A stretch of DNA of 63,235 bases, filler included, from Octopus bimaculoides (lineage: Eukaryota): the NCBI RefSeq assembly GCF_001194135.2. It is 5 parts of 5 records of this genome, joined end to end, with 100 filler letters (N's around TTAATTAATTAA, not from the genome) between each part and the next. Parts side by side here need not be neighbours in the genome. Positions count along the whole stretch, not along the records: positions 8,236 to 33,708 come from NC_068983.1; 4 more parts are not named here. One strand, 5' to 3'. Positions 3,871 to 33,230 of the stretch are shown piece by piece. How positions within the stretch are numbered: position 1 is the first letter of the stretch; the number at the start of each line of letters is the position of its first letter. The position numbers were made by a program, and so were the translations under genes. The notes under the pieces are model-generated. The model was not told the origin of the DNA. It saw only the letters and a list, made by a program, of their open reading frames with translations, and searched no databases.

Positions 3871-4465
3871 NNNNNNNNNNNNNNNNNNNNNNNNNNNNNN
3901 NNNNNNNNNNNNNNNNNNNNNNNNNNNNNNNNNNNNNNNNNNNNNNNNNNNNNNNNNNNNNNNNNNNNNNNNNNNNNNNNNNNNNNNNNNNNNNNNNNNN
4001 NNNNNNNNNNNNNNNNNNNNNNNNNNNNNNNNNNNNNNNNNNNNNNNNNNNNNNNNNNNNNNNNNNNNNNNNNNNNNNNNNNNNNNNNNNNNNNNNNNNN
4101 NNNNNNNTTAGAAGCAAGCTTCTTACCACACAGCCACGCCTGCAACTATACAATAATAACTATATAATAATATATCATAATATATAGTCTTACCTTCTTC
4201 AGCACATCTAAACCCTTTGAAACACCTTCCCAATCCACCACGTTGAAATCTGCTGGCGTCCTTAATTGTTTAGCGCCAAAATGCAGACAGCCTCAGTGTG
4301 AAAAGTAGTCAGCAGCAGCAGGAAAAATATTCAGAAGCGAATATTAAAAAAAAAAACATTATAACAATATGCATACATGTATAACATATTATGCTTTACA
4401 TATACAATATATAAAAATACCAGCAATTATTAAAATATATAACGTAGAGCATAGAAAGTAGGATA

Positions 4466-8071: not shown

Positions 8072-8241
8072 CATACATATATACATACATATATACATAC
8101 ATATACATACATATATATGCATACATATATATATANNNNNNNNNNNNNNNNNNNNNNNNNNNNNNNNNNNNNNNNNNNNTTAATTAATTAANNNNNNNNN
8201 NNNNNNNNNNNNNNNNNNNNNNNNNNNNNNNNNNNTTTCTT

Positions 8242-8556: not shown

Positions 8557-10318
8557 CAGCTATTTGGCTTTTTGTCACAAAAAAGGACACTCAGTATGAG
8601 TGATACAGCAGTAATATATCGTCGAATAGTATATTATTATTGGTTATAGCAGAATATGACTGCCAGTTTCACAGACTTGCTGGTTGGAAACGTGTAGCGT
8701 CTTCTACCCATCTATCTAGCTCTGTGTGTGTGTTCCTTCAAGCAGTTATGTAGGGACGATGCCTTGGCATTGTCAAGAGGGGGAAACAGCCACGCCCTCG
8801 ACAGGCTCAGGAAGGACCCAGCCTATACCCTCAAATTCCTCAGGCTCAAAATTACAACAGAGACAAGCTTTAAAATAATTTCCTAGTTGATACATTAGAC
8901 ATAGACCCAGATTCTTAAAAACCCCTTCCAGAAACGAAATAGAGGCAGACATTAACACAGCTTCCTGGGATCTGCAACTTACCTTCCGGTGAAGAGATCA
9001 ATGCAATGCCCCTGTACTATAACTTCTATAACTGCAAGCAGTTTCAAAAATAGCATTTGTTATATGCTCAACCCTAGCCCCACTTAGAGAAAGTTCCACT
9101 TAAAGTTATATGGTTTGTATGCATGCTCATTTTCTCTAAATGGTAAGACTTGTGTAAGTGGGATTCTCCTTAGAGAAGTAGATAAGCATTTTCAACTGAC
9201 ATATAAATACAGGAAATTTTTAAATAGGCACACCTTGAGGGTCTGAATACCTAACAAAGCAAATATAACTAAAAGCCGAAATCATTCAGAGAAGCAAACT
9301 GCTCATGCAGAAGTAATGCCATATGCCCACTAAATGGCTAATGTAAGACAGGGGCCATTGTGTGTAAGGTGAAGGTAGTATCAAAGGATCCCACTGGAGT
9401 GACTCAAGCACAGAGATAAGTTGGTGTTAAAGAAAGTCCTCTCAAAGCCAGTCTGAATACTCACAAGTCTTATTTTAAAATCCAGGAGAGAGATGTAATG
9501 CCACAACATTGATATGACACTTATGGCTATTAAAAAGATGCTGGCAGACTACACTTCAGTAGTAGTAGGGGGTGCAAACTTTATTTAGCAAAGAAAGGGA
9601 TTATCACTATATATATACAAGCAACAACCCCAGGTGATATTAGCTTTTAAAGAGAAATGATGGAACAACACCACACAAATCCCTTCAGTAACAGGATATG
9701 TAGTATGTCTGCCACCATGTTAATTGATAGGACATATCAAATGGACTGTATTGGCTTCATTTGAAGTCATACTTTACATTCCATTTGGCTGTAGATAGTT
9801 ATGAAAGGGTGTAACATGACGATCAGAGTATTTTGTTCAAGTAAAATGAAAGACTCCAATTGTAGCCACAAAAGACATTGGCAAGATCCACTTTGAGATT
9901 TACTATAGGTAAATCTTAGCATAGAATTTGAGTCCAAAGTAGCAATTGTTATTTCAATATATTTTTGTGTTTCTTCAATCAAAAAGATAGTGTTTTTAAA
10001 ATGGGTTGGTAGTGCATATTCTGGAGTTCAGAGGATATCTAATTATGTGCCATGAGCAACATGTAGTTACTGAGCTATGACTAATGTGTGTGTTTGTGTG
10101 CATGTGTATGTGTATGTATGGGTGTATATATGTATAGATATTTGTATGCATGTATATATGTGTACATGGAAAGCGGACGTTAAACGATGATGATGATGAT
10201 GATGATATTACATGTACATCTATATATATACATATACATGTATGCATATAGATCTAAATCTATATATATATATCTATACATATACGTGTATATATACATC
10301 TATATGTATACATATACA

Positions 10319-10350
<32 letters not shown>

Positions 10351-11086
10351 CATCTATCTATATATATATATATATATATACATGTATATGGATACATTTG
10401 TGCAGATATATATATATGCATGTTTGTATGCCTGTATATATGTGAGAGTATAGTTTCACTGTAGTAGTTTCAGTATGAAAATGAAGCCACACATACACAC
10501 ACATGCACACACTACACACATACTTCAAACTGTCAAACACCTTTCTACTGACCATTCCTCTATGCACATGTGAAGAGATGCACAACTGCACAAAAAGACC
10601 ACTACTCCTGCTACCATGCTACTGAATTCTTCCTACATCAAGTGACACAAAGTTCACTCACACACATATTAACAGACAAATCCATGCACACACACACACA
10701 CCACACATACACACACATATGCACACACACACACACACACACTTGCGTGCATGCACATACCCACATATACCTCCTTCTCTTACACTCTCCTGTCTTAGAA
10801 AGAACTTTTTCCTCACCCATTCCCTTCCAGTCATTTCAAAATGTAACCACATGTGAATTGTTGGCAATTTTCTTCCTTCATCTTCTTTTCTATTGGACTT
10901 TCCTCTGTTTCTGAAGAAGTGCATTGCTCAAAACGTTAAACCATCTTTCTTTCCTTCCCTCAGCAGTCTGCTAATACTTCACATGTACCACGTCCTCATG
11001 TTGTTGTGTTTTTTTTTTTTGTTTGTTTGTTGTTCTTCTTTTTTGGGATTTACTACATTTATATATATATATATATNNNNNNNNNN

Positions 11087-11450
11087 ACTGTGGCCATGCT
11101 GGAGCACCACCTTTAGTCGAGCAAATCGACCCCAGGACTTATTCTTTGTGAGCCTAGTACTTATTCTATCGTCTCTTTTGCCGAACCGCTAAGTTACGGG
11201 GACGTAAACACACCAGAATCGGTTGTCAAGCGATGTTGGGGGGACAAACACAGACACGCAAACACACACACACACATACATATATACGATGGACTTCTTT
11301 CAGTTTCCGTCTACCAAATCCACTCACAAGGCTTTGGTCGGCCCGAGGCTATAGTAGAAGACACTTGCCCAAGGTGCCACGTAGTGGGACTGAACCCGGA
11401 ACCATGTGGTTGGTAAGCAAGCTACTTACCACACAGCCACTCCTACGCCT
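11087..11450 (-). mobile_element. tRNA-headed SINE family A (most abundant here)
   Basis: Head GCGTAGGAGTGGCTGTGTGGTAAG...GGTTCAGTCCC, internal (TG)n, conserved tail; more than 12 copies in the window. Confidence 0.9.
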
Positions 11451-11769
11451 ATATATATATAATATCTGGAAAGTTTGCCACAAACAGTTATGCTACACAG
11501 AAAATATTGTCAAATGAATAAAGAAATTTGAAATGATTTGAGAAATTGCTTTACCCCTTTCTTTCTGGTTGAAACAATTACATACCAAGAGGAGAAATTC
11601 ATCTTTTGTCTTGCGGCAAACTTTCCTACGGCCAAAAATCCTGAGGCGAATTTTCCTGTGGCAAACTTTCCTAGAACCATTGTGTGCATGTGTGTATTAA
11701 ACTCTTCAGAAAGTTGAAATAAGGCATCTTATCCGAGATAGGGAGTTGAGCAGATGCTAAATATTATGT

Positions 11770-11975
11770 ACCTGTCTTTCTGACCTCATATTTCAGCAAG
11801 GTCATGAAAGGAATTATCAGTGACAGACTGATTATGTATTCTGAGAAGAAAATTACTTGTTAAGTAAGACTGAACATGGTTTCCATCCAGGTAGAATCTG
11901 CTTCATACAACTGCTGCAGCAGTTGATAAACTAATTAAATGTAGTTGTGGTATATGAGGGCTTTCAAAGACAACT
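11770..11975 (+). mobile_element. CR1/L2-type LINE reverse transcriptase fragment
   Basis: PVFLTSYFSKVMKGIISDRL...NYLLSKTEHGFHPGRICFIQLL resembles RPISLTS..KVMERII..RL..QHGFRPGRSC.TQLL. Confidence 0.7.
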
Positions 11976-13795: not shown

Positions 13796-14328
13796 CCATT
13801 TACCAAATCCACTTACAAAGCTTTGGTCGGCCCAAAGCTATAGCAGAAGACACTTGCTCAAGGTGCCACGCAGTGGGACTGAACCCCAAACCATGTGGTT
13901 GGTAAGCAAGCTACTTACCACACAGCTACTCATCATATTTTTTTTACTTGTATCAGTCATTTGACTGCAGCACTGCTGTAAATGTTTATATTAGTCAAAG
14001 AAATCAACCCCAGAACTTATTCTTTGTAAACCTAGTACTTACTGTATCAGTCTCTTTTGCTGAACTGCTAAGTTACAGAGACTTAAAAACACCAACATCA
14101 GTAGTGAAGCAATGGTGGGGTGACAAACACAGACACAAAGACACACACACACACATATATAAAAACACGACTAGCATCTTTCAGTCTTCATTTATCAAAT
14201 CCACCCACAAGGCTTTGGTCAGCCCAAGGTTATAGTAGAAAACACTTGCCCAAGGTGCCACATAGTGGGACTGAACCTAGAACCATGTAGTTGGGAAGCT
14301 CTTTACCACATAGCCACACCTGTGCCTA
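13795..14328 (-). mobile_element. Two SINE family A copies (partial and near-full)
   Basis: Similar to 11087-11450. Confidence 0.8.
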
Positions 14329-14824
14329 TATATATATGCTTGTGAATGTGTATGTATAGAGATGGTTCTAGATATGGCACTTGCATGAAAGAAGAACATG
14401 AGTAGAGATTAAAAATTCACAACAGCCATTTCAACAGCATTTTTTCATTGATGAATAGTTCAATAATCATGATTACATCATGAAAAAATCCACTTTTGTC
14501 AGGTGATTTTAAACATAGGTAAGAGAAAAATTCAAATCAACTCACTTTGCCAGGCATTGGCATAACAAGTGAGTATATTTAAAGAACCATTAAAATTTAA
14601 AGAAACTGTTAGCAATACATATAGGGCAGATATTGGTGACAATAAATTTTGTAGATCACTATCATAATCATGTATTCTATAAGGCCTAAAGAAGCAATAA
14701 AAGAGGACTGAGGAAGAAAAAGTAAAAAAAGGATTATAGATGGGAAAGGGAAGAAATTGGCCTTGTAAAGCAAAAGTTTGAGTTGGTGCCAAAATTCTTG
14801 TGACCATTCAAGTTTTTTTTTTGA

Positions 14825-15197
14825 CTTTCAGTCTTGTTTCAGTCATTAGACTGTGGTCATGCTGGGACACTGCCTTGAGGAATTTTAGTACTTATTTTTC
14901 TTTTTGAGTCTAGTACTTATTCTATCATTTTTTTTTTTTTTGCCAGACTGCTAAGTTACGGGGATGTAAACACACCAACACTGGCTGTCCAGTGGTGGTG
15001 GAGGACAAACACACACGCACACATGTATATATATACAAATACAACAGGCTTCTTTTCAGTTTCCATCAATGAAATCTACTTACAAGGCTTCAGTTAGCCA
15101 AGGGTTATAATAGAAATCACTTGCCCAAGGTGCCACACTATGTGACTAAACCCAGAACCATGTGGTTAGGAAGTACCACACAACCACACCTGCAACT
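14825..15197 (-). mobile_element. SINE family A, diverged
   Basis: Similar to 11087-11450. Confidence 0.75.
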
Positions 15198-16196: not shown

Positions 16197-16286
16197 CTGT
16201 TTTAAACAATAATGCATGTAACTCCTACTAAATGTATTGAGTGCATTTCTCTTTTGTGTGTCAACTCACTCATGTATGTATGTAGT

Positions 16287-16688
16287 TATAGGAGTGGCTG
16301 TGTGGTAAGTAGCTTGCTTTCCAACCACATGGTTCCGAGTTCAGTCCCACTGCGTGGCACCTTGGGCAAGTGTCTTCTACTATAGCCTTGGGCCGACCAA
16401 AGCCTTGTGAGTTGATTTGGTAGACAGAAACTGAAAGAAGCCCGTCGTATATATGTATATATATATATGTGTGTATGTATGTTTGTGTGTCTGTGTTTGT
16501 CCCCCCAACATCGCTTGACAACCGATGCTGGTGTGTTTACGTCCCCGTAACTTAGCGGTTCGGCAAAAGAGACAGATAGAATAAGTACTAGACATCCAAA
16601 GAATAAGTCCTGGGGTCGATTTTCTTGACTAACGGTGGTGCTCCAGCATGGCCGCAGTCAAATGACTGACTGAAACAAGTAAAGAGTA
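16287..16688 (+). mobile_element. SINE family A, full length
   Basis: Complete head-to-tail copy. Confidence 0.9.
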
Positions 16689-20430: not shown

Positions 20431-20957
20431 AGTGTGGTAAAGGTTGTTTTCTGCACATTCTCACTGTTTATTGCTCCTGAGCGTCTACCACATACAAAAA
20501 CTATCTTGCTAGTTAGCCATGCATATATATATATATGTATATGTATATGTATATATANNNNNNNNNNNNNNNNNNNNNNNNNNNNNNNNNNNNNNNNNNN
20601 NNNNNNNNNNNNNNNNNNNNNNNNNNNNNNNNNNNNNNNNNNNNNNNNNNNNNNNNNNNNNNNNNNNNNNNNNNNNNNNNNNNNNNNNNNNNNNNNNNNN
20701 NNNNNNNNNNNNNNNNNNNNNNNNNNNNNNNNNNNNNNNNNNNNNNNNNNNNNNNNNNNNNNNNNNNNNNNNNNNNNNNNNNNNNNNNNNNNNNNNNNNN
20801 NNNNNNNNCAAAGCTTTCAAAAGGATATATGTTTTTTTATCACATGTGATATAAAAAATATATATCCTTTTGAAAGCTTCGAATATTGATTTCCTAACTC
20901 CAACATATCTACATATGTTTCTTTATAAATATATATATATAGGCATATATATATATA

Positions 20958-21853
20958 TAACATTGGTAAGAAAGTTCTTGGACAAGTCATTGTTGCAAGT
21001 CATTGAAGCCGATCCAATGCAAACTGCACATCAACTTGCGGTACAGTTTCGCGTCTGCCATGTCACAATCATCAACTACCTGCATTGTCTCGGCAAGGTC
21101 ATCAAGCTTGGAAAATGGGTGCCGCATGAAGTGACTAAAGCGAAGAAACGAGCATGTGTCACTGTATGTCAAAGTCTACTCTGGCGAAGCCGAAGATTCG
21201 ATTGGTTGGAGTCAGTAATCACTATGGATGAAAAGAGGGTACTGTTGAGGTGCTGATGATCCTGGTGTAGCAAAGGTCAACAGCCAAAACCTTCAGCAAA
21301 AGGACCGCTCGTGCAAAAGAAGATTATGACCTCAGTTTGGTGGGATTGCCATGGGGTGATCATGTTGGATCCTCTCCCACACAATACCACTGTTGACAAG
21401 GATGTCTACTGCGAACAAATCGACCATCTAAAGATTGTGCTGGCCAAAAAACTCTCAAATTTGAAGAAGATAATTTACCACCAAGACAATGCGCCAGCAC
21501 ATCGTGCAAAGAAGACATCAGAGAAGCGGAAGAAGGTGGACTGGGAGATTATGATGCACGCGCCCTATTCTCCTGAGCTTGCCCTTTCTAACTACCACTT
21601 ATTTTCTGCCTTGCAGCATGCGATTGGCAATACAGAGTTCAAAAACGAAGATATGAAATCGTTCCTTTACAACTTTATTGATTCAAAGCCACGCAATTTC
21701 TGGATGTAAGGATTCAAAACTTTGCCTGAAAAATGGCAAAAGGTGATCGATAACGAGCGTCATTACCTTTTAAATTGATTGTTCTTTGTTGTTTTTTTAA
21801 TTGTTAATAAAGTGATATGTTAAAAGTGTCCAAGAACTTTCTTAACAAATTCA
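20958..21853 (+). mobile_element. Internally deleted mariner (D34D type) with both TIRs
   Basis: TIR TAAGAAAGTTCTTGGACA with its inverse at 21827-21844; GKWVPHE, ITMDEK, HQDNAPAH and YSPELALSN motifs; in-frame stops; N-terminus missing. Confidence 0.92.
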
Positions 21854-23185: not shown

Positions 23186-24991
23186 TTAGATGTTGAAATT
23201 AGAATGAACCAATAAGATATTCTCAAAATTTTCTGGCAGCAAATTGTTTCTTTGAGGACTTAAAATGGTTTCAAAAATAGAAAATAAATGTTTCATGCTA
23301 ATTTGTGTCATTGGAACAGCATGAACAATTATAGCCAATTTATATACATCTTCAAATTTTATCTTCATCATATTCCACCAAGAAATTAAACAACTGTCTG
23401 CTGGAATTCTTTCAATATTTACAAAGTCCTTCAAGGACAATGTGATAGATTTTCTTGGAGTACTTGAATTTTTTTTGTTTTGTGCAGCCAATCTAAGCAT
23501 GATTTCCAACTCATCTGATGTAGTAGGGACCATCTGCTCTGAAATGACATGAAATTCAGGTTTGGGATACATTGTGCATAGTGTGCCATTAAGTCTTATC
23601 AAATGACTAATAGCTTGTTCTTCTTCTGCTTCAGATAACATAACACTAAACCTAGGATCAAGATATAATGATGCTAATACTACTCCATTTTTAAGTAGTT
23701 CATTTTCTTTTACATTCATTGCAGCAGTGATATTGTGAGCTAGTAGACAATTAATTTTAGATATTTCACTTTTGCAAACAAACCACACCTTATAGAAATC
23801 TCCTGGAGTTAAATTTTCTTCTTGTAATTGCACTATAGCTTTTTTAGCAGGTTCCAGTACATGTACAATTTCTTGTAATTCCTCCCAGTATTTAAGAGAA
23901 AGTTTCACATCTACTCCAATTATTTCAACAAACTCTTCAATAAATGATCGGAGTACCATTAAGCGATAGATCATTTCATATGTTGAGCACCATTGTGTCA
24001 CAACATCAACAATAGGCATATGACATTTCCGAGTTTTTAAAATATTCATTATAGCCGGGTTCTGCAGTCTTTTAGAAAGTTTTCTAGCATGAGATATAGT
24101 GTTTGTATACAATTCCCTGTTTAAAGCATCTTTTACTACATGTAGCAAGGCATGAGCAGCACATTTGACAAGGAAACAATTCCCTATTTTTATATCTTCC
24201 ACACCACATACATTACTATCTTCACTAATAGTCTGAGCCCTGCCATCATTTCTAGCATTATCAATAATGATTGAATACACTTGATTTATACTCAAGTTGT
24301 ATTTTGATAGCACATTTGTAACTATTTCTTTGATATTTTCTCCTGAATAAGTTGAAGAAAAGTTTGTCACAGATAATGTTCTGATTTGAAGAGAGGTTCT
24401 AGTAATAAAATGGGCATTGATAGCTAGCAGAGATTTATCTAAGTGAGAGGCAATATCAATTTTAAGGGAAAACATTCTGTTTTGCAGCTCTCCACTTATT
24501 TGATGTACAATTTCTGCAGCTCTCTCATCAACTAAAGTTGAAATTTTCTTTCTATCCATTGTTGTATTAAGAGCTTTTTTAATTGGATCCAATATTTTAC
24601 ATAAACCACTATCTTCTATTGCAGGAAAAGGTATCCCATTCAAAGTTACCATCTCAATCACAGCTTTATTAAATGTTCTTATGTTCATTGGAATATTAAT
24701 TGTTGGACAAAATATATCCTGAACAGTACTCTTTGCGAACTTGCCATCAATGTGGTTTGGAGCTTTTTCATCAGGTAACCGAGATCGTTTATCCGTCGAT
24801 GCATGACGTCTTCTAATCAGGATTTCAAACTCAGTTTTGTGGTATCTCTCCAGATGTTTCATTAGATTAGTAGCGCAGGGATGTCTCAGAACCATAGGAC
24901 AACCCATAACATTACAAGATGCTGTTGCTTGTTTCTGAGTACCGACTATTGTAAAATATGTATATACTTCATTAGTTTTGGCGCGGCCCAT
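23186..24991 (-). CDS. Intact single-exon hAT-transposase-derived protein (BED zinc finger, RNase H-like core, hAT C-terminal dimerisation domain); ZBED-like, probably catalytically inactive
   Basis: 601-aa uninterrupted ORF. BED finger VYTYF...CNVMGC...NLMKHLERYH; SLKID (D179); IIIDNARN (D244); CAAH; TQWCSTY (canonical TRWNST); SWW...PMTQISMKHLFS (canonical ATQVSVERxFS, so Glu is replaced by K567). Confidence 0.9.
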   Translation of the reverse strand: MGRAKTNEVYTYFTIVGTQKQATASCNVMGCPMVLRHPCATNLMKHLERYHKTEFEILIRRRHASTDKRSRLPDEKAPNHIDGKFAKSTVQDIFCPTINIPMNIRTFNKAVIEMVTLNGIPFPAIEDSGLCKILDPIKKALNTTMDRKKISTLVDERAAEIVHQISGELQNRMFSLKIDIASHLDKSLLAINAHFITRTSLQIRTLSVTNFSSTYSGENIKEIVTNVLSKYNLSINQVYSIIIDNARNDGRAQTISEDSNVCGVEDIKIGNCFLVKCAAHALLHVVKDALNRELYTNTISHARKLSKRLQNPAIMNILKTRKCHMPIVDVVTQWCSTYEMIYRLMVLRSFIEEFVEIIGVDVKLSLKYWEELQEIVHVLEPAKKAIVQLQEENLTPGDFYKVWFVCKSEISKINCLLAHNITAAMNVKENELLKNGVVLASLYLDPRFSVMLSEAEEEQAISHLIRLNGTLCTMYPKPEFHVISEQMVPTTSDELEIMLRLAAQNKKNSSTPRKSITLSLKDFVNIERIPADSCLISWWNMMKIKFEDVYKLAIIVHAVPMTQISMKHLFSIFETILSPQRNNLLPENFENILLVHSNFNI

Positions 24992-25065: not shown

Positions 25066-25161
25066 CTATGTAAGAAATTAGAAATACAAACTAAGGGGCA
25101 CGAAAATAATTATAGGGAAAATTTACTTCGAAGTAAACAGATTGTAAATACCGTTACTTAC
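25066..25161 (-). other. Candidate 96-nt intron in the 5' UTR of the ZBED-like gene
   Basis: Minus strand has donor CA|GTAAGT at 25161 and acceptor TTTCTAATTTCTTACATAG|G at 25066, about 75 nt upstream of the ATG. Confidence 0.45.
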
Positions 25162-25299
25162 TGATTTCTTCAATTAGGGAATATAGTTTATTAGCCTCGT
25201 AATTACATGAAGACAAAGAATACTGCTACATTCCACGTTTTTAAAACAGCTTAGTGAATTGGAATTTAAAATAATATTTAGAATATTCATAACCCGAAG

Positions 25300-25474
25300 C
25301 CGAGAAGGAAAAAAATAGAAACTGAAATTCTAACTGGAATCGAAATTCAATCGAAGTCTTTTATTAATGCTTTATATCAATTCAAATAAAATCTCAGTTT
25401 GTTAGAGTTTCGATTCGGTTTCTAATTTTAATTTCAGCTTTTTAAAAATCGTTTCGCTTCGATTTCTACCTCTG
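25300..25474 (-). mobile_element. Remnant hAT-like left end / subterminal region upstream of the ZBED-like ORF
   Basis: Minus strand begins CAGAGGTAGAAATCGAAGCGAAACGATT, followed by repeated AATCGA/AACCGA-type motifs in both orientations. No matching end seen downstream of the ORF. Confidence 0.35.
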
Positions 25475-25910: not shown

Positions 25911-26124
25911 ACCCCTTTTTCTTTTTTTTCTTTCATTTTTTTCTACCCCACCCCATTTTCCGCTACAGAGAATATGTTTCGGACGCCAAGAATAAAAGAT
26001 GTTTTATGTGATACATTCTACCAGTATACGAAGTTTGAAAGTGTTTAGTTACAAAAAATTAATTTCTCGATCTGCCGGTCAAAAGGAAAAGATCCGTAAA
26101 ATTTAACAAAATCTATTTGCAGTG

Positions 26125-27452
26125 ACAATGGCAGCTGCGGAAGCCTACAACGTCATGCGACGAACGACGAAGAGAGAGGAGAGAAAAACTGCCGTGGGAG
26201 GCAGCGACCGTTTATAGGCCGGTTGTTTCAAGTGCCAGAGATCGCACATGGCAAGGGACTGCGCGGAGACAAAACCCAAACCCATTTGCTATTGGTGCAG
26301 GTAGGTAGTGCATATCACTCGAAACTGCAATCAGGGAAAAGGCCACGGAGAAATTGCTGTCCTTCACACCCCTCCCCCCGCGAACAAGTCGAGGCTCTCG
26401 TGCAGTCGCTGCCCATAATTGAAGTCCTGGTTAGAGGAAAAGCGTTCAAAGCCCTCGTGGATACGGGCTGTACAACGTCTCTCGTGACCCCAAGGATGAC
26501 AAAAATGTGGANNNNNNNNNNNNNNNNNNNNNNNNNNNNNNNNNNNNNNNNNNNNNNNNNNTGGAGCACAACACTGAGGATGCGGGTAATTGTGATCGAC
26601 CTTGTGGTAGACGGAATTGATGTGGTGATCAGCATGGACGCGATCAACCGCCTATGAGGTGTCAGTGTCAGTGGAGACATGGCTTCATTTGGTGGTGCAG
26701 GGCAATCATGCGCTGTGAGTCTACAACAAGAAAGGGGGAAGAGCGCCTCCACCGCCCGGGGTAGGCTTTGTACTGCCCCCACCATTGAAGATAAAGATTT
26801 TCAGGCCGTGTTCGACGGTCAACGGTGGAGGTGGAGTGACGCTGGAAAGGGGTGGGGCCCAAAGCTGAAGAACAAGCTAAGCTGTTCTCAACATACCCTG
26901 AAAAGAGATGTCAGGAGTGAGTTTGAAGGAGAGGTAGAGAGATGGATCGAGGAGAGTATTCTAATCCTATGGACGGAGGAAGTGAAGAACGGAGTGCTGC
27001 TACTAAGAGCAGTCGCGCAGCCAACGGAGTGCAAGGTCAGGCCGGTACTGAACTTTCGAGAGCTGAATGAGCATGTATCGTGCAACACAGGCGGCAAGGT
27101 GACTGGTGTCTGCAGAGAGACGTTGCGAGAATGTAGACGGATGACGAGGGCAGCATCAATTGTCGACTTGAAGTCGGCATTTCTGCAGATCGACGTGAAC
27201 AAGAAATTGTGGAAGTATCGGCTGGTGAGATACAAAGGCCAGACATACTGTTCGTCTAGGCTGGGTTTCAGGCTGAATTCTGTACCAAAGATCATGGCAA
27301 CAGTGCTCAAATCTATCCTGGGAAATTTGGACAAGGTAAAAAAAAGCCACCAATTCCTGGACTACATCCTCGTAGACTAGATTGTAGTGTCTGTCGCAGA
27401 GGTTATAGGTCACTTAAAAAAGTTCGGGCTGATTGCGAAATTACCGGAGCCA
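26125..27452 (+). mobile_element. Ty3/Gypsy-type LTR retrotransposon remnant (gag zinc knuckles, protease, RT)
   Basis: CFKCQRSHMARDC and CYWCR*VVHITRNC knuckles; ALVDTGCTTS protease; RPVLNFRELN...VDLKSAFLQI...LGFRLNSVP; YxDD motif corrupted to FLDY. Confidence 0.88.
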
Positions 27453-31570: not shown

Positions 31571-32356
31571 GAAGAAAAATAAANNNNNNNNNNNNNNNNN
31601 NNNNNNNNNNNNNNNNNNNNNNNNNNNNNNNNNNNNNNNNNNNNNNNNNNNNNNNNNNNNNNNNNNNNNNNNNNNNNNNNNNNNNNNNNNNNNNNNNNNN
31701 NNNNNNNNNNNNNNNNNNNNNNNNNNNNNNNNNNNNNNNNNNNNNNNNNNNNNNNNNNNNNNNNNNNNNNNNNNNNNNNNNNNNNNNNNNNNNNNNNNNN
31801 NNNNNNNNNACTCGGAAAATTCTCATGCTTTGAGTACTGTCACCACTTTCCCATTGGTCGGCGAAATTTTTTTCTTCATATTCGTTTACTACACGTTATT
31901 TTACACCTAGTACACTATTTTTTCAATTTTTGTGGCAGTGGGTGGGGTTCGGACTCCAATAATTCACATGTTTTTTTTGTTTTGTTTTTTTTGCTCCGGT
32001 CAAACACAGGAGTTTGACTGTAAATCGCTATATTCAAGGATCACCTTAATATTCTAATGTACTTTTCCCTGATTTCCTGTCTTTTCAAATCAGTAACTCA
32101 GTAGATGTCCAGTTCAGTTTCAAGTCTCGCAGATATTGACTTTGGTGCACCGATTATGTATATATACATATATACATTTGTGTTGGATAAAAGAAAATTG
32201 TATCTCATTCTTGTTCATGTGAACTCGGATTACGTTTACAGTTACTTATTTGTGGGGGGTGGGAATCTTGTTTCTTTGTACAATGAAATAGAACTACATC
32301 AGCAAAATCTTATACTAGTTACTTCATAGTGCAATCTACGTATTTTTATTCCGCTA

Positions 32357-32529
32357 TAGGCATAGGAGTGGCTGTGTGGTAAGTAACTTGCTTACCAACC
32401 ACATGGTTCCAGGTCCAGTCCCACTGCGTGGCACCTTTGGCAAGTGTCTTCTACTATAGCCTCAGGCCGACCAAAGCCTTGTGAGTTGATTTGGTAGACG
32501 GAAACTGAAAGAAGCCCGTCGTGTATATG

Positions 32530-32570
<41 letters not shown>

Positions 32571-32760
32571 CTGTTTGTCCCCCAACATTGCTTGACAACC
32601 GATGCTGGTGTGTTTACATAACCTGTAACTTAGCGGTTTGGCAAAAGAGCCAATAGAATAAGTACTAGGCTTACAAATAATAAGTCCTGGGGTTGATTTC
32701 TTCGACTAAATGCGGTGCTCCAGCATGGCCACAGTCAAATGACTGAAACGAGTAAAAGAG
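32357..32760 (+). mobile_element. SINE family A, full length
   Basis: Nearly collinear with 16287-16688. Confidence 0.9.
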
Positions 32761-33230
32761 TATTTCTGCAATATATAGTTAAGTACCATTTATATTAACC
32801 ATTTTCACTTCATATATACTTTTATTTTCACGATCATATTGTAGTATTAATCAGACACCTGGTTTTACGCAAAGAATTTGGTGAGGCATACCTGCTTAGA
32901 TGATTTGTTAAAGCATATTTGTATCAGGGAGTAGTCAGTGTAGAATTGGCATAACTTCAAGTTAAATGTGTTGAAGTAATAGAGGATTCAAGGATCAGAG
33001 AGTATATAGTTGGATAGTTGAACTATGTTGTCTTGATTAGGCAATGATCAGTCTATTTGGCGGGACCAAAGCCAGTGGTGGTTAGGTGAAGGCTAGGTCT
33101 GAAGGAAAAAAAGGAGATTTGTTCACTGGAAAGTTATTTTATTGTCTCCTAGTGTAGACAGTTCAGAATAGTTCAAGGTAGTAGTGCTTAAATGTTTCTA
33201 TCTCATCTTCCTGGTTGTTATAGATTTAAT

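Follow-up and report, generated by a model that had tools for sequence, protein, structure and literature searches.

The locus at positions 23186–24991 of a 63,235-nucleotide stretch of Octopus bimaculoides DNA (assembly GCF_001194135.2; hereafter the window, in which the locus lies within a 25.5-kb piece of NC_068983.1 at positions 8236–33708) raises the question of whether a long reading frame related to hAT transposases is the remains of a mobile element or a gene that now serves its host. We favor the second answer, with a probability of roughly 0.78: the frame belongs to a host gene that goes back to a hAT DNA transposon, one that was immobilised in an ancestor of the sampled octopods. 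It is most likely an octopod-lineage domesticated hAT of the ZBED or SLEEPER kind, and every test that was run agrees with the original prediction, made from the DNA sequence, of an immobilised, non-cutting, hAT-derived gene under purifying selection. The kind of event is well known; this particular gene is so far undescribed, and its family is named only automatically in the databases, as 'HAT C-terminal dimerisation domain-containing protein' (A0A0L8FS48) and 'finger BED domain-containing 4' (CAI9717790.1, of O. vulgaris).

The gene is a complete, intronless coding sequence (CDS) of 601 amino acids (aa) on the reverse strand, running from ATG to TAA over 23186–24991. It is fully open, as originally claimed, and an open frame of 601 codons at 33% G+C is far beyond chance. 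A database of 5.8 billion protein clusters yields only four homologues. The first is a 602-aa O. bimaculoides protein, 73% identical; in one 90% cluster with it are a 602-aa protein of O. vulgaris and a partial Logan sequence that comes from a third octopodid. The second is a 608-aa Logan protein (P0002), 52% identical, and the remaining two are distant. The window protein is 73–74% identical to the two 602-aa proteins and has the same start (MGR) and end (NFNI, followed by the stop codon), and the intact, full-length frame is common to both species (601 aa for the window protein, 602 aa for each of the other two). The third octopodid is represented by partial Logan contigs only (L004 and L005).

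The transposase architecture is complete, with a BED finger, an RNase H-like core with an alpha-helical insertion, and a C-terminal dimerisation domain. The BED-type zinc finger occupies residues 8–52 (24836–24970; this and the following features of the gene are all on the reverse strand), with C26, C31, H46 and H51 as putative ligands in a Cx4C spacing. The N-terminal part of the RNase H-like core spans residues 173–345 (23957–24475) and carries D179, D244, C277/H280 and Q333-W334. It is followed by an all-alpha insertion domain at residues 346–520 (23432–23956), which is helical in an AlphaFold model and aligns with the Hermes insertion domain in Foldseek, and by the hAT dimerisation region at residues 532–598 (23198–23398; Dimer_Tnp_hAT, PF05699), which holds K567 and then H568 and scores 37.2 bits against a Pfam cut-off of 21.4. 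The model, for which the input was a 52-sequence alignment, has a pLDDT of 84.5 and a pTM of 0.73, and the sole structures in the Protein Data Bank (PDB) that match it with E below 0.001 are 12 Hermes chains (E 4e-16 to 2e-12, TM 0.60–0.72); the Hermes transposase is likewise the sole sequence match when PDB is searched with phmmer. The original prediction held that the BED finger is kept. The ligands are indeed there, as is a confidently modelled beta-beta-alpha unit at residues 13–50 (pLDDT 89–96), but the window N-terminus, aligned over the full zf-BED profile (2–44), scores only 13.6 bits (E 0.07) and so falls short of the 20.6-bit cut-off, whereas the homologous segment of P0002 scores 25.5 bits. 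The finger of the window protein is thus, by its profile score, a divergent one.

What the protein lacks is the third member of the catalytic triad. The phmmer alignment to Hermes, which had been proposed as a check, places D179 (codon 24455–24457; SLKIDI against SATIDL) opposite Hermes D180 and D244 (codon 24260–24262; IIIDN against FVTDR) opposite D248, while the position of the third residue of the Hermes D180/D248/E572 triad is taken by K567 (SMKHLFS against ASERTFS, with K567-H568 opposite E572-R573). The CxxH motif (C277/H280; KCAAHAL against NCSSHLL) is intact, and in the RW motif Q333-W334 (codons 23990–23995; VTQWCSTY against PTRWNSTY) stand opposite R318-W319. The codons concerned are AAA for K567 (23291–23293), CAA for Q333 (23993–23995) and CAT for H568. 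In an alignment with 157 relatives the columns are strongly conserved: the two Asp residues in 136/137 and 143/148, the Cys and His of CxxH in 153/155 and 145/155, the Arg and Trp of RW in 139/156 and 153/156, and the catalytic Glu and the Arg that follows it in 112/129 and 115/129. The Gln, Lys and His of the window protein are therefore real departures. Both halves of the original description of the active site are borne out by these alignments, that is, the replacement of the Glu by K567 and of the two Arg residues by Q333 and H568, and the retention of D179, D244, CxxH and W334 together with the dimerisation domain. The two Asp residues, CxxH and Trp match residues that Hermes uses for metal binding and hairpin handling. 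Judging from these homologies, we infer that the octopod protein would be unable to cut or join DNA.

The loss of the Glu is old. The octopod sequences all read S-V/M-K-R/H-L-F-S (SMKHLFS in the window; SVKRLFS in the 602-aa O. bimaculoides protein, O. vulgaris and L004), and P0002, two further proteins (P0003 and P0004) and a decayed metagenomic element (L006, described below) all read SVER. Since the Lys is common to the homologues of O. bimaculoides, O. vulgaris and the third octopodid, it did not arise privately in some recent copy. At this codon the window, O. vulgaris and L004 have AAA and P0002, the nearest relative that keeps the Glu, has GAA, so that the single G-to-A change proposed in the original prediction is possible. 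A neighbor-joining tree has the topology (L006,(P0002,(window,(O. bimaculoides,O. vulgaris)))), every node having a bootstrap value of 100%, from which it follows that the Glu-to-Lys change arose once, on the octopod stem. The Arg of the RW motif has a different history: its codon is CAA (Gln) in the window, GGA (Gly) in Octopus and CGC (Arg) in P0002, and because the window and Octopus codons differ it was lost independently in two lineages. Among other family-conserved positions, R310 is Q, S or C across the octopods and M249/K250, after the second Asp, are replaced in them; overall, 65 of the 90 family-conserved positions, zinc ligands included, are kept in the window and 75 of the 90 in O. 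bimaculoides. This pattern is as would be expected if catalysis went first and the constraint on substrate-contacting residues then lapsed.

A second replacement lies in the helix of the former catalytic Glu. Octopods read S-V-K-R-L-F-S-I-F-E-T where P0002, L006, P0003 and P0004 read S-V-E-R-x-F-S-x-x-K/R, which amounts to a charge swap over residues 567–574 (23270–23293), E567K being accompanied by K574E two turns away. Going by position and charge, the pair may be a structural compensation.

The protein has been under purifying selection along its whole length and over a long time (dS about 0.85). Nonsynonymous and synonymous divergence (dN and dS) and their ratio, omega, were estimated by the Nei-Gojobori method with bootstrap 95% confidence intervals (CIs), dN/dS being another of the checks proposed at the outset. 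For the window and O. vulgaris (locus OX597815.1, here L003, with the gene at 10001–11809) dN is 0.146, dS 0.85 and omega 0.17 (CI 0.13–0.23), and for O. vulgaris and L004, within Octopodidae, dN is 0.030, dS 0.23 and omega 0.13 (CI 0.075–0.21). The window–O. vulgaris dS is about fourfold that of O. vulgaris and L004, which would fit either a distant octopod or an ancient paralogue as the origin of the window sequence, and the three Octopus-group sequences with the Lys codon lie at dS 0.85–1.0 from the window. Because both O. vulgaris and L004 carry the Lys, all of the divergence between them postdates the loss of the Glu. Across six regions of the protein omega ranges from 0.09 to 0.32, with values of 0.15 for the BED finger, 0.20 for the RNase H-like core, 0.14 for the insertion domain and 0.09, the lowest, for the dimerisation region. 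The window and O. vulgaris genes differ by merely three in-frame one-codon indels, and the probability that a neutral frame would stay free of stops over a dS of 0.85 is about 1e-22. In a relative-rate test with P0002 as outgroup the window lineage has 49 replacements against 34, an acceleration that is not significant (chi2 2.7).

Signs of mobility are lacking. The original prediction saw no paired terminal inverted repeats (TIRs) and no 8-bp target-site duplication (TSD), and a scan of 3 kb on each side of the gene (TIRs matching at 9/11 or more, TSDs at 7/8 or more) likewise finds only microsatellite artefacts and one chance-level pair. That pair, at 20877/26033 (9/11 TIR, 8/8 TSD), was discarded, since it is part of a local palindrome and of a repeat that O. 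vulgaris has twice, its TIR does not extend, and its position is far outside the block of homology. Neither the 25.5-kb piece nor a 21.8-kb stretch of O. vulgaris has a second copy of the gene, the protein databases hold no other cluster above 60% identity to the window protein, and one intact gene per species is seen for the octopods in the databases. A HMMER scan of 1.84 billion representative proteins returns 3988 hAT relatives, and no full-length protein among those representatives and outside the clade exceeds about 34–36% identity; the only closer fragments outside the clade are two pieces of L006, at 51% and 46%. A profile search with the family alignment (A1) adds one distant protein and no more.

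The nearest relatives outside the octopods differ in state. P0002 is intact and has the Glu, and two metagenomic relatives are broken. L006 (European Nucleotide Archive (ENA) contig ERZ893782:k147_3744424, 1–4184) is a decayed hAT with a TIR that keeps SVER and RW, with its reading frame in three frameshifted pieces and an insertion of about 900 nt. Its terminus, CAGGGCTGGGG, is at position 72, and arrays of ATCGAAA lie at 83–216 and 4031–4184; from this layout L006 would show the form of the ancestral transposon, a terminus with subterminal repeat arrays on both sides. L007 (JGI metagenome contig Ga0137829_11549447), 53% identical to the window protein and 60% to P0002, has an in-frame stop at codon 306 and keeps the RW motif. 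Outside the octopods the family thus looks like an ordinary decaying transposon. The L006 insertion itself carries a 73-nt inverted repeat (1942–2014 and 2268–2340, 88% identical) and is possibly a miniature inverted-repeat transposable element (MITE).

The flanks of the gene point to a fixed locus in two octopodids. O. vulgaris and L004 are 95% identical in the CDS and 83% identical along more than 600 nt of 3′ flank, in which there are several indels; as the flank can be aligned and evolves about three times faster than the CDS, the gene occupies the same site in both. Between the window and O. vulgaris, homology covers the CDS (78.8% over 1833 nt), 12 nt past the stop codon and one block upstream, and there is no alignment of the downstream flanks (score 7.5, against 3.6 ± 1.9 for shuffles). 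Two collinear-looking matches between the window and O. vulgaris about 3 kb upstream were not counted as synteny, at least one of them overlapping a repeat that occurs elsewhere in the window. At positions 1–26 of L004 and L005, upstream of codon 246 and right at the second catalytic Asp, similarity to O. vulgaris is lost and the contigs come to an end; the cause may be an assembly tip, an insertion or a true truncation in that species.

The conserved upstream block, at −137 to −458 from the ATG (25128–25449, reverse strand), aligns with O. vulgaris L003 9524–9878 (E 2e-24), with a global score of 89 against 4.9 ± 2 for shuffles. There are several features of note. First, four of the nine ATCGAA motifs in the whole 25.5-kb piece fall within 120 nt, at 25339–25463: those at 25339, 25350 and 25409 are inside the block and the fourth, at 25458, is just past its distal edge. 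Second, the motifs sit in an imperfect palindrome (25310–25443) that is also present in O. vulgaris, whose equivalent stretch is matched by the L006 subterminal ATCGAAA arrays (E 1e-6). Third, at the distal edge of the block is a possible relic of a 5′ TIR, CAGAGGTAGAAATCG (25460–25474, reverse strand), with a CAGAGG terminus. It matches the L006 terminus CAGGGCTGGGGATCGAAATCG at 12/17 positions, the differences being mostly A/G, which is weak evidence taken alone, and it resembles the CAGAG starts of the hobo and Hermes ends. From these resemblances the block probably represents what is left of the subterminal region at the left end of the ancestral transposon; today it may be promoter or 5′ untranslated region (UTR). 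That it remains alignable at a dS of 0.85, when no shared right end can be detected, suggests that it is constrained, perhaps as promoter, 5′ UTR or binding sites. No right-end partner for the 25460–25474 relic was found on the 3′ side.

This relic left end (25128–25474) went unseen in the original prediction. A hairpin was considered for the palindrome and is ruled out, the palindrome folded as single-stranded DNA being no more stable than shuffles (z −0.09). The best conserved part of the block, about 81% identical over 65 nt, contains GTAAGTAA at 25154–25161 (reverse strand), a perfect 5′ splice-site consensus that is conserved in O. vulgaris (L003 9814–9878), and a pyrimidine-rich stretch ending in AG lies directly before the ATG; by its consensus, the GTAAGTAA donor could belong to a short 5′ UTR intron. 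In O. vulgaris, 1.0–1.3 kb past the stop codon (L003 12810–13133), there are ATCGAA-like motifs (GAAATTAAAAATTAGAATCGAAT and AAACTGAAATCG) in a region that ends in CCCCGAGCCTCTG, which is the inverse of the CAGAGGCTCGGGG terminus and resembles the inverted L006 terminus. It could be a remnant of the O. vulgaris right end but was not accepted as one: the matches are at chance level, the region has an E of 0.004, and there is no matching TSD.

Several points weigh against a domesticated gene inherited at one locus. The loss of catalysis rests on one residue, by homology to Hermes; the BED finger of the octopod proteins scores under the Pfam threshold; the window protein has lost 25 of the 90 family-conserved residues, against 15 of the 90 in O. 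bimaculoides; and copy number was judged from protein databases. Flank homology between the window and O. vulgaris also stops at the relic element. Beyond the relic terminus there is a marginal 36-nt match to O. vulgaris (equalled by 10/300 shuffles when 125 nt are tested, and short of significance over 300 nt), and the window copy could be an ancient paralogue of the Octopus gene, not its positional orthologue. Orthologue or paralogue, both copies descend from a Lys-bearing ancestor and have been under purifying selection since.

Of the other explanations, the one that survives best, though unlikely, is that the protein is domesticated but still performs a DNA transaction such as nicking, hairpinning or strand transfer, in the manner of Kat1 or RAG1 and with a non-canonical active site. 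It would account for the retention under selection of D179, D244, C277/H280 and W334, and for an RNase H-like core that is as constrained as the rest of the protein (omega 0.20). Against this, every octopod copy has a cationic Lys in place of the third carboxylate, the RW Arg and R310 positions differ freely from one octopod to another, and inactive domesticated transposases are also seen to retain two Asp residues.

It is similarly improbable that the window and Octopus genes represent two long-lived transposon lineages, or an ancient duplication, with omega reflecting selection during active life and the Lys tolerated or compensated. Values of omega below 1 are common between subfamilies of transposable elements (TEs), and window–O. 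vulgaris flank homology ends at the edge of the relic element; both points speak for this reading. Compensation is conceivable too, as octopod E574 (FSIFET), seven residues downstream, is Lys or Arg in the relatives and completes a charge swap; a carboxylate one or two helical turns off would, however, be unlikely to reach the metal site. Also against this reading, the locus is fixed in Octopodidae, where the flank diverges at about three times the rate of the CDS and omega is 0.13, all of it after the change from Glu to Lys. Nor do the window and O. vulgaris have a detectable shared right end, homology stopping 12 nt past the stop codon; the catalysis-linked Arg residues have drifted differently in each lineage, and the protein databases show no further copies. 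Least probable by far is a recently dead, ordinary hAT copy with a frame still open for lack of time and with private Lys, Gln and His changes, which the setting among decayed mariner and retroelement fragments in a repeat-rich region and the possibility of reaching all three changes by single transitions might suggest, but which is refuted by the common AAA codon at dS 0.85–1.0 and the omega of 0.17, and opposed by the lack of close database copies and of TIRs or a TSD and by the neutral open-frame probability of about 1e-22, contamination by the same genome being excluded by the 21% nucleotide divergence.

If the gene is, as we favor, a domesticated one, its history would be that of a hAT DNA transposon immobilised in the octopod ancestor, which lost its catalytic Glu and had its reading frame kept as a host gene. 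The protein would have been retained for sequence-specific DNA binding by the BED finger together with oligomerisation, making it a regulator or a chromatin-binding factor; the original prediction had suggested a transcription factor or a repressor of related hAT elements as possible roles. By analogy with the Hermes left end, its ancestral target may have been the ATCGAA-type subterminal repeat. The Hermes BED domains bind two subterminal repeats, arranged as a quasi-palindromic pair, at the left end but not at the right (PMC10368747), and because a relic left end survives upstream of the octopod gene, self-binding becomes a concrete hypothesis. The conserved palindromic ATCGAA cluster, about 330–480 nt upstream of the gene's own ATG, would then be a site of autoregulation through own-promoter binding, a role put forward here on the Hermes parallel. 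The full proposal, an octopod-specific dead hAT kept with its own left-end sites as a self-regulating BED-finger transcription factor acting on ATCGAA quasi-palindromes, with E567K and K574E compensating one another, is speculative, and we hold it to be possible but on balance doubtful. If true, it would give the lophotrochozoans their first characterised domesticated hAT gene of full length.

Several known systems come close to the gene. With Hermes, hobo and Ac-type hATs it shares the fold (Foldseek E 4e-16, TM about 0.7), the order of motifs, the two Asp residues, CxxH and Trp; its relic left end starts with CAGAG, and the short subterminal repeats are analogous to the Hermes BED sites. Unlike active hATs it lacks the catalytic Glu, the RW Arg, a right end and a TSD; no further copies were found, and it is under purifying selection at a fixed locus. 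In angiosperms, DAYSLEEPER/SLEEPER is a domesticated hAT with a BED finger and a hAT C-terminal (hATC) domain that has lost the residues for transposition and acts as a DNA-binding host factor; the SLEEPER genes belong to the plant lineage, and their origin is unrelated to that of the octopod gene.

Vertebrate ZBED1, ZBED4 and ZBED6 likewise have a BED finger, an RNase H-like region with a helical insertion and the hAT dimerisation domain, and are single-locus host genes without transposon ends; precomputed Pfam hits for the octopod protein also point to ZBED1-type RNase-like domains. In contrast to the vertebrate ZBEDs, which are reported to conserve the DDE triad (PMC3606216), the octopod gene has D-D-K, and it has one BED finger. 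It probably also differs in being an independent octopod event; in the sets compared, which included no vertebrate ZBED sequence, the nearest relatives found outside the clade are hAT-like proteins of arthropods, fish and metagenomes, at 34% identity or less. The label 'ZBED-like' is accordingly meant as analogy, not descent. A survey of TE-derived factors in O. bimaculoides lists only two ZBED genes, both truncated, without transposase or hAT dimerisation domains, and none of full length (PMC10027918). Those genes are, like the present one, transposon-derived BED proteins of Octopus with a Ka/Ks below 1, but the family described here is of full length (A0A0L8FS48 in O. bimaculoides) and absent from that survey.

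Vertebrates and plants provide well-documented cases of hATs domesticated as BED-finger regulators, but hardly any are documented in molluscs, among which the cephalopods are of special interest for their TE-rich genomes and unusually expanded gene-regulatory repertoire. The finding is useful rather than surprising. It offers a clean case, in that there is no ambiguity about the inactivating change, which can be dated to the octopod stem, while the next relatives still look like ordinary transposons. It comes, moreover, with a candidate DNA target upstream of the gene itself, in the form of the relic subterminal repeats. A gene with a D-D-K triad also bears on whether the host function of such genes needs the catalytic pocket.

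The region around the gene is rich in repeats, and the gene stands among decayed mariner and retroelement fragments; the original statement that neighbouring TE genes are broken is correct for both. A mariner/Tc1-type transposase about 1.5 kb downstream of the gene, adjoining an N gap, is spread over two reading frames on the forward strand (20870–21256 and 21311–21709), with an N-terminus resembling HTH_Tnp_Tc3_2 and a Transposase_1 match (E 8e-13). A retroelement fragment at 26223–27380 (forward strand) has a D-T-G aspartyl protease motif and a reading frame resembling a reverse transcriptase (RT), the protease/RT region being cut by N gaps; it is richer in G+C (about 50%) than the surrounding DNA (about 33%), and its best database matches are about 50% identical. 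A repeat of about 380 nt resembling a short interspersed element (SINE) is present in five copies (11087–11464, 13939–14337, 14833–15125, 16275–16683 and 32355–32762), which are 71–84% identical to O. vulgaris L003 530–905 and occur in both orientations, as would suit an octopod source of the window DNA. Finally, a short repeat at 25985–26094 is found twice, in inverted arrangement, in O. vulgaris (L003 20817–20897 and 21121–21218, 80–86% identical), and is possibly the end of a MITE.

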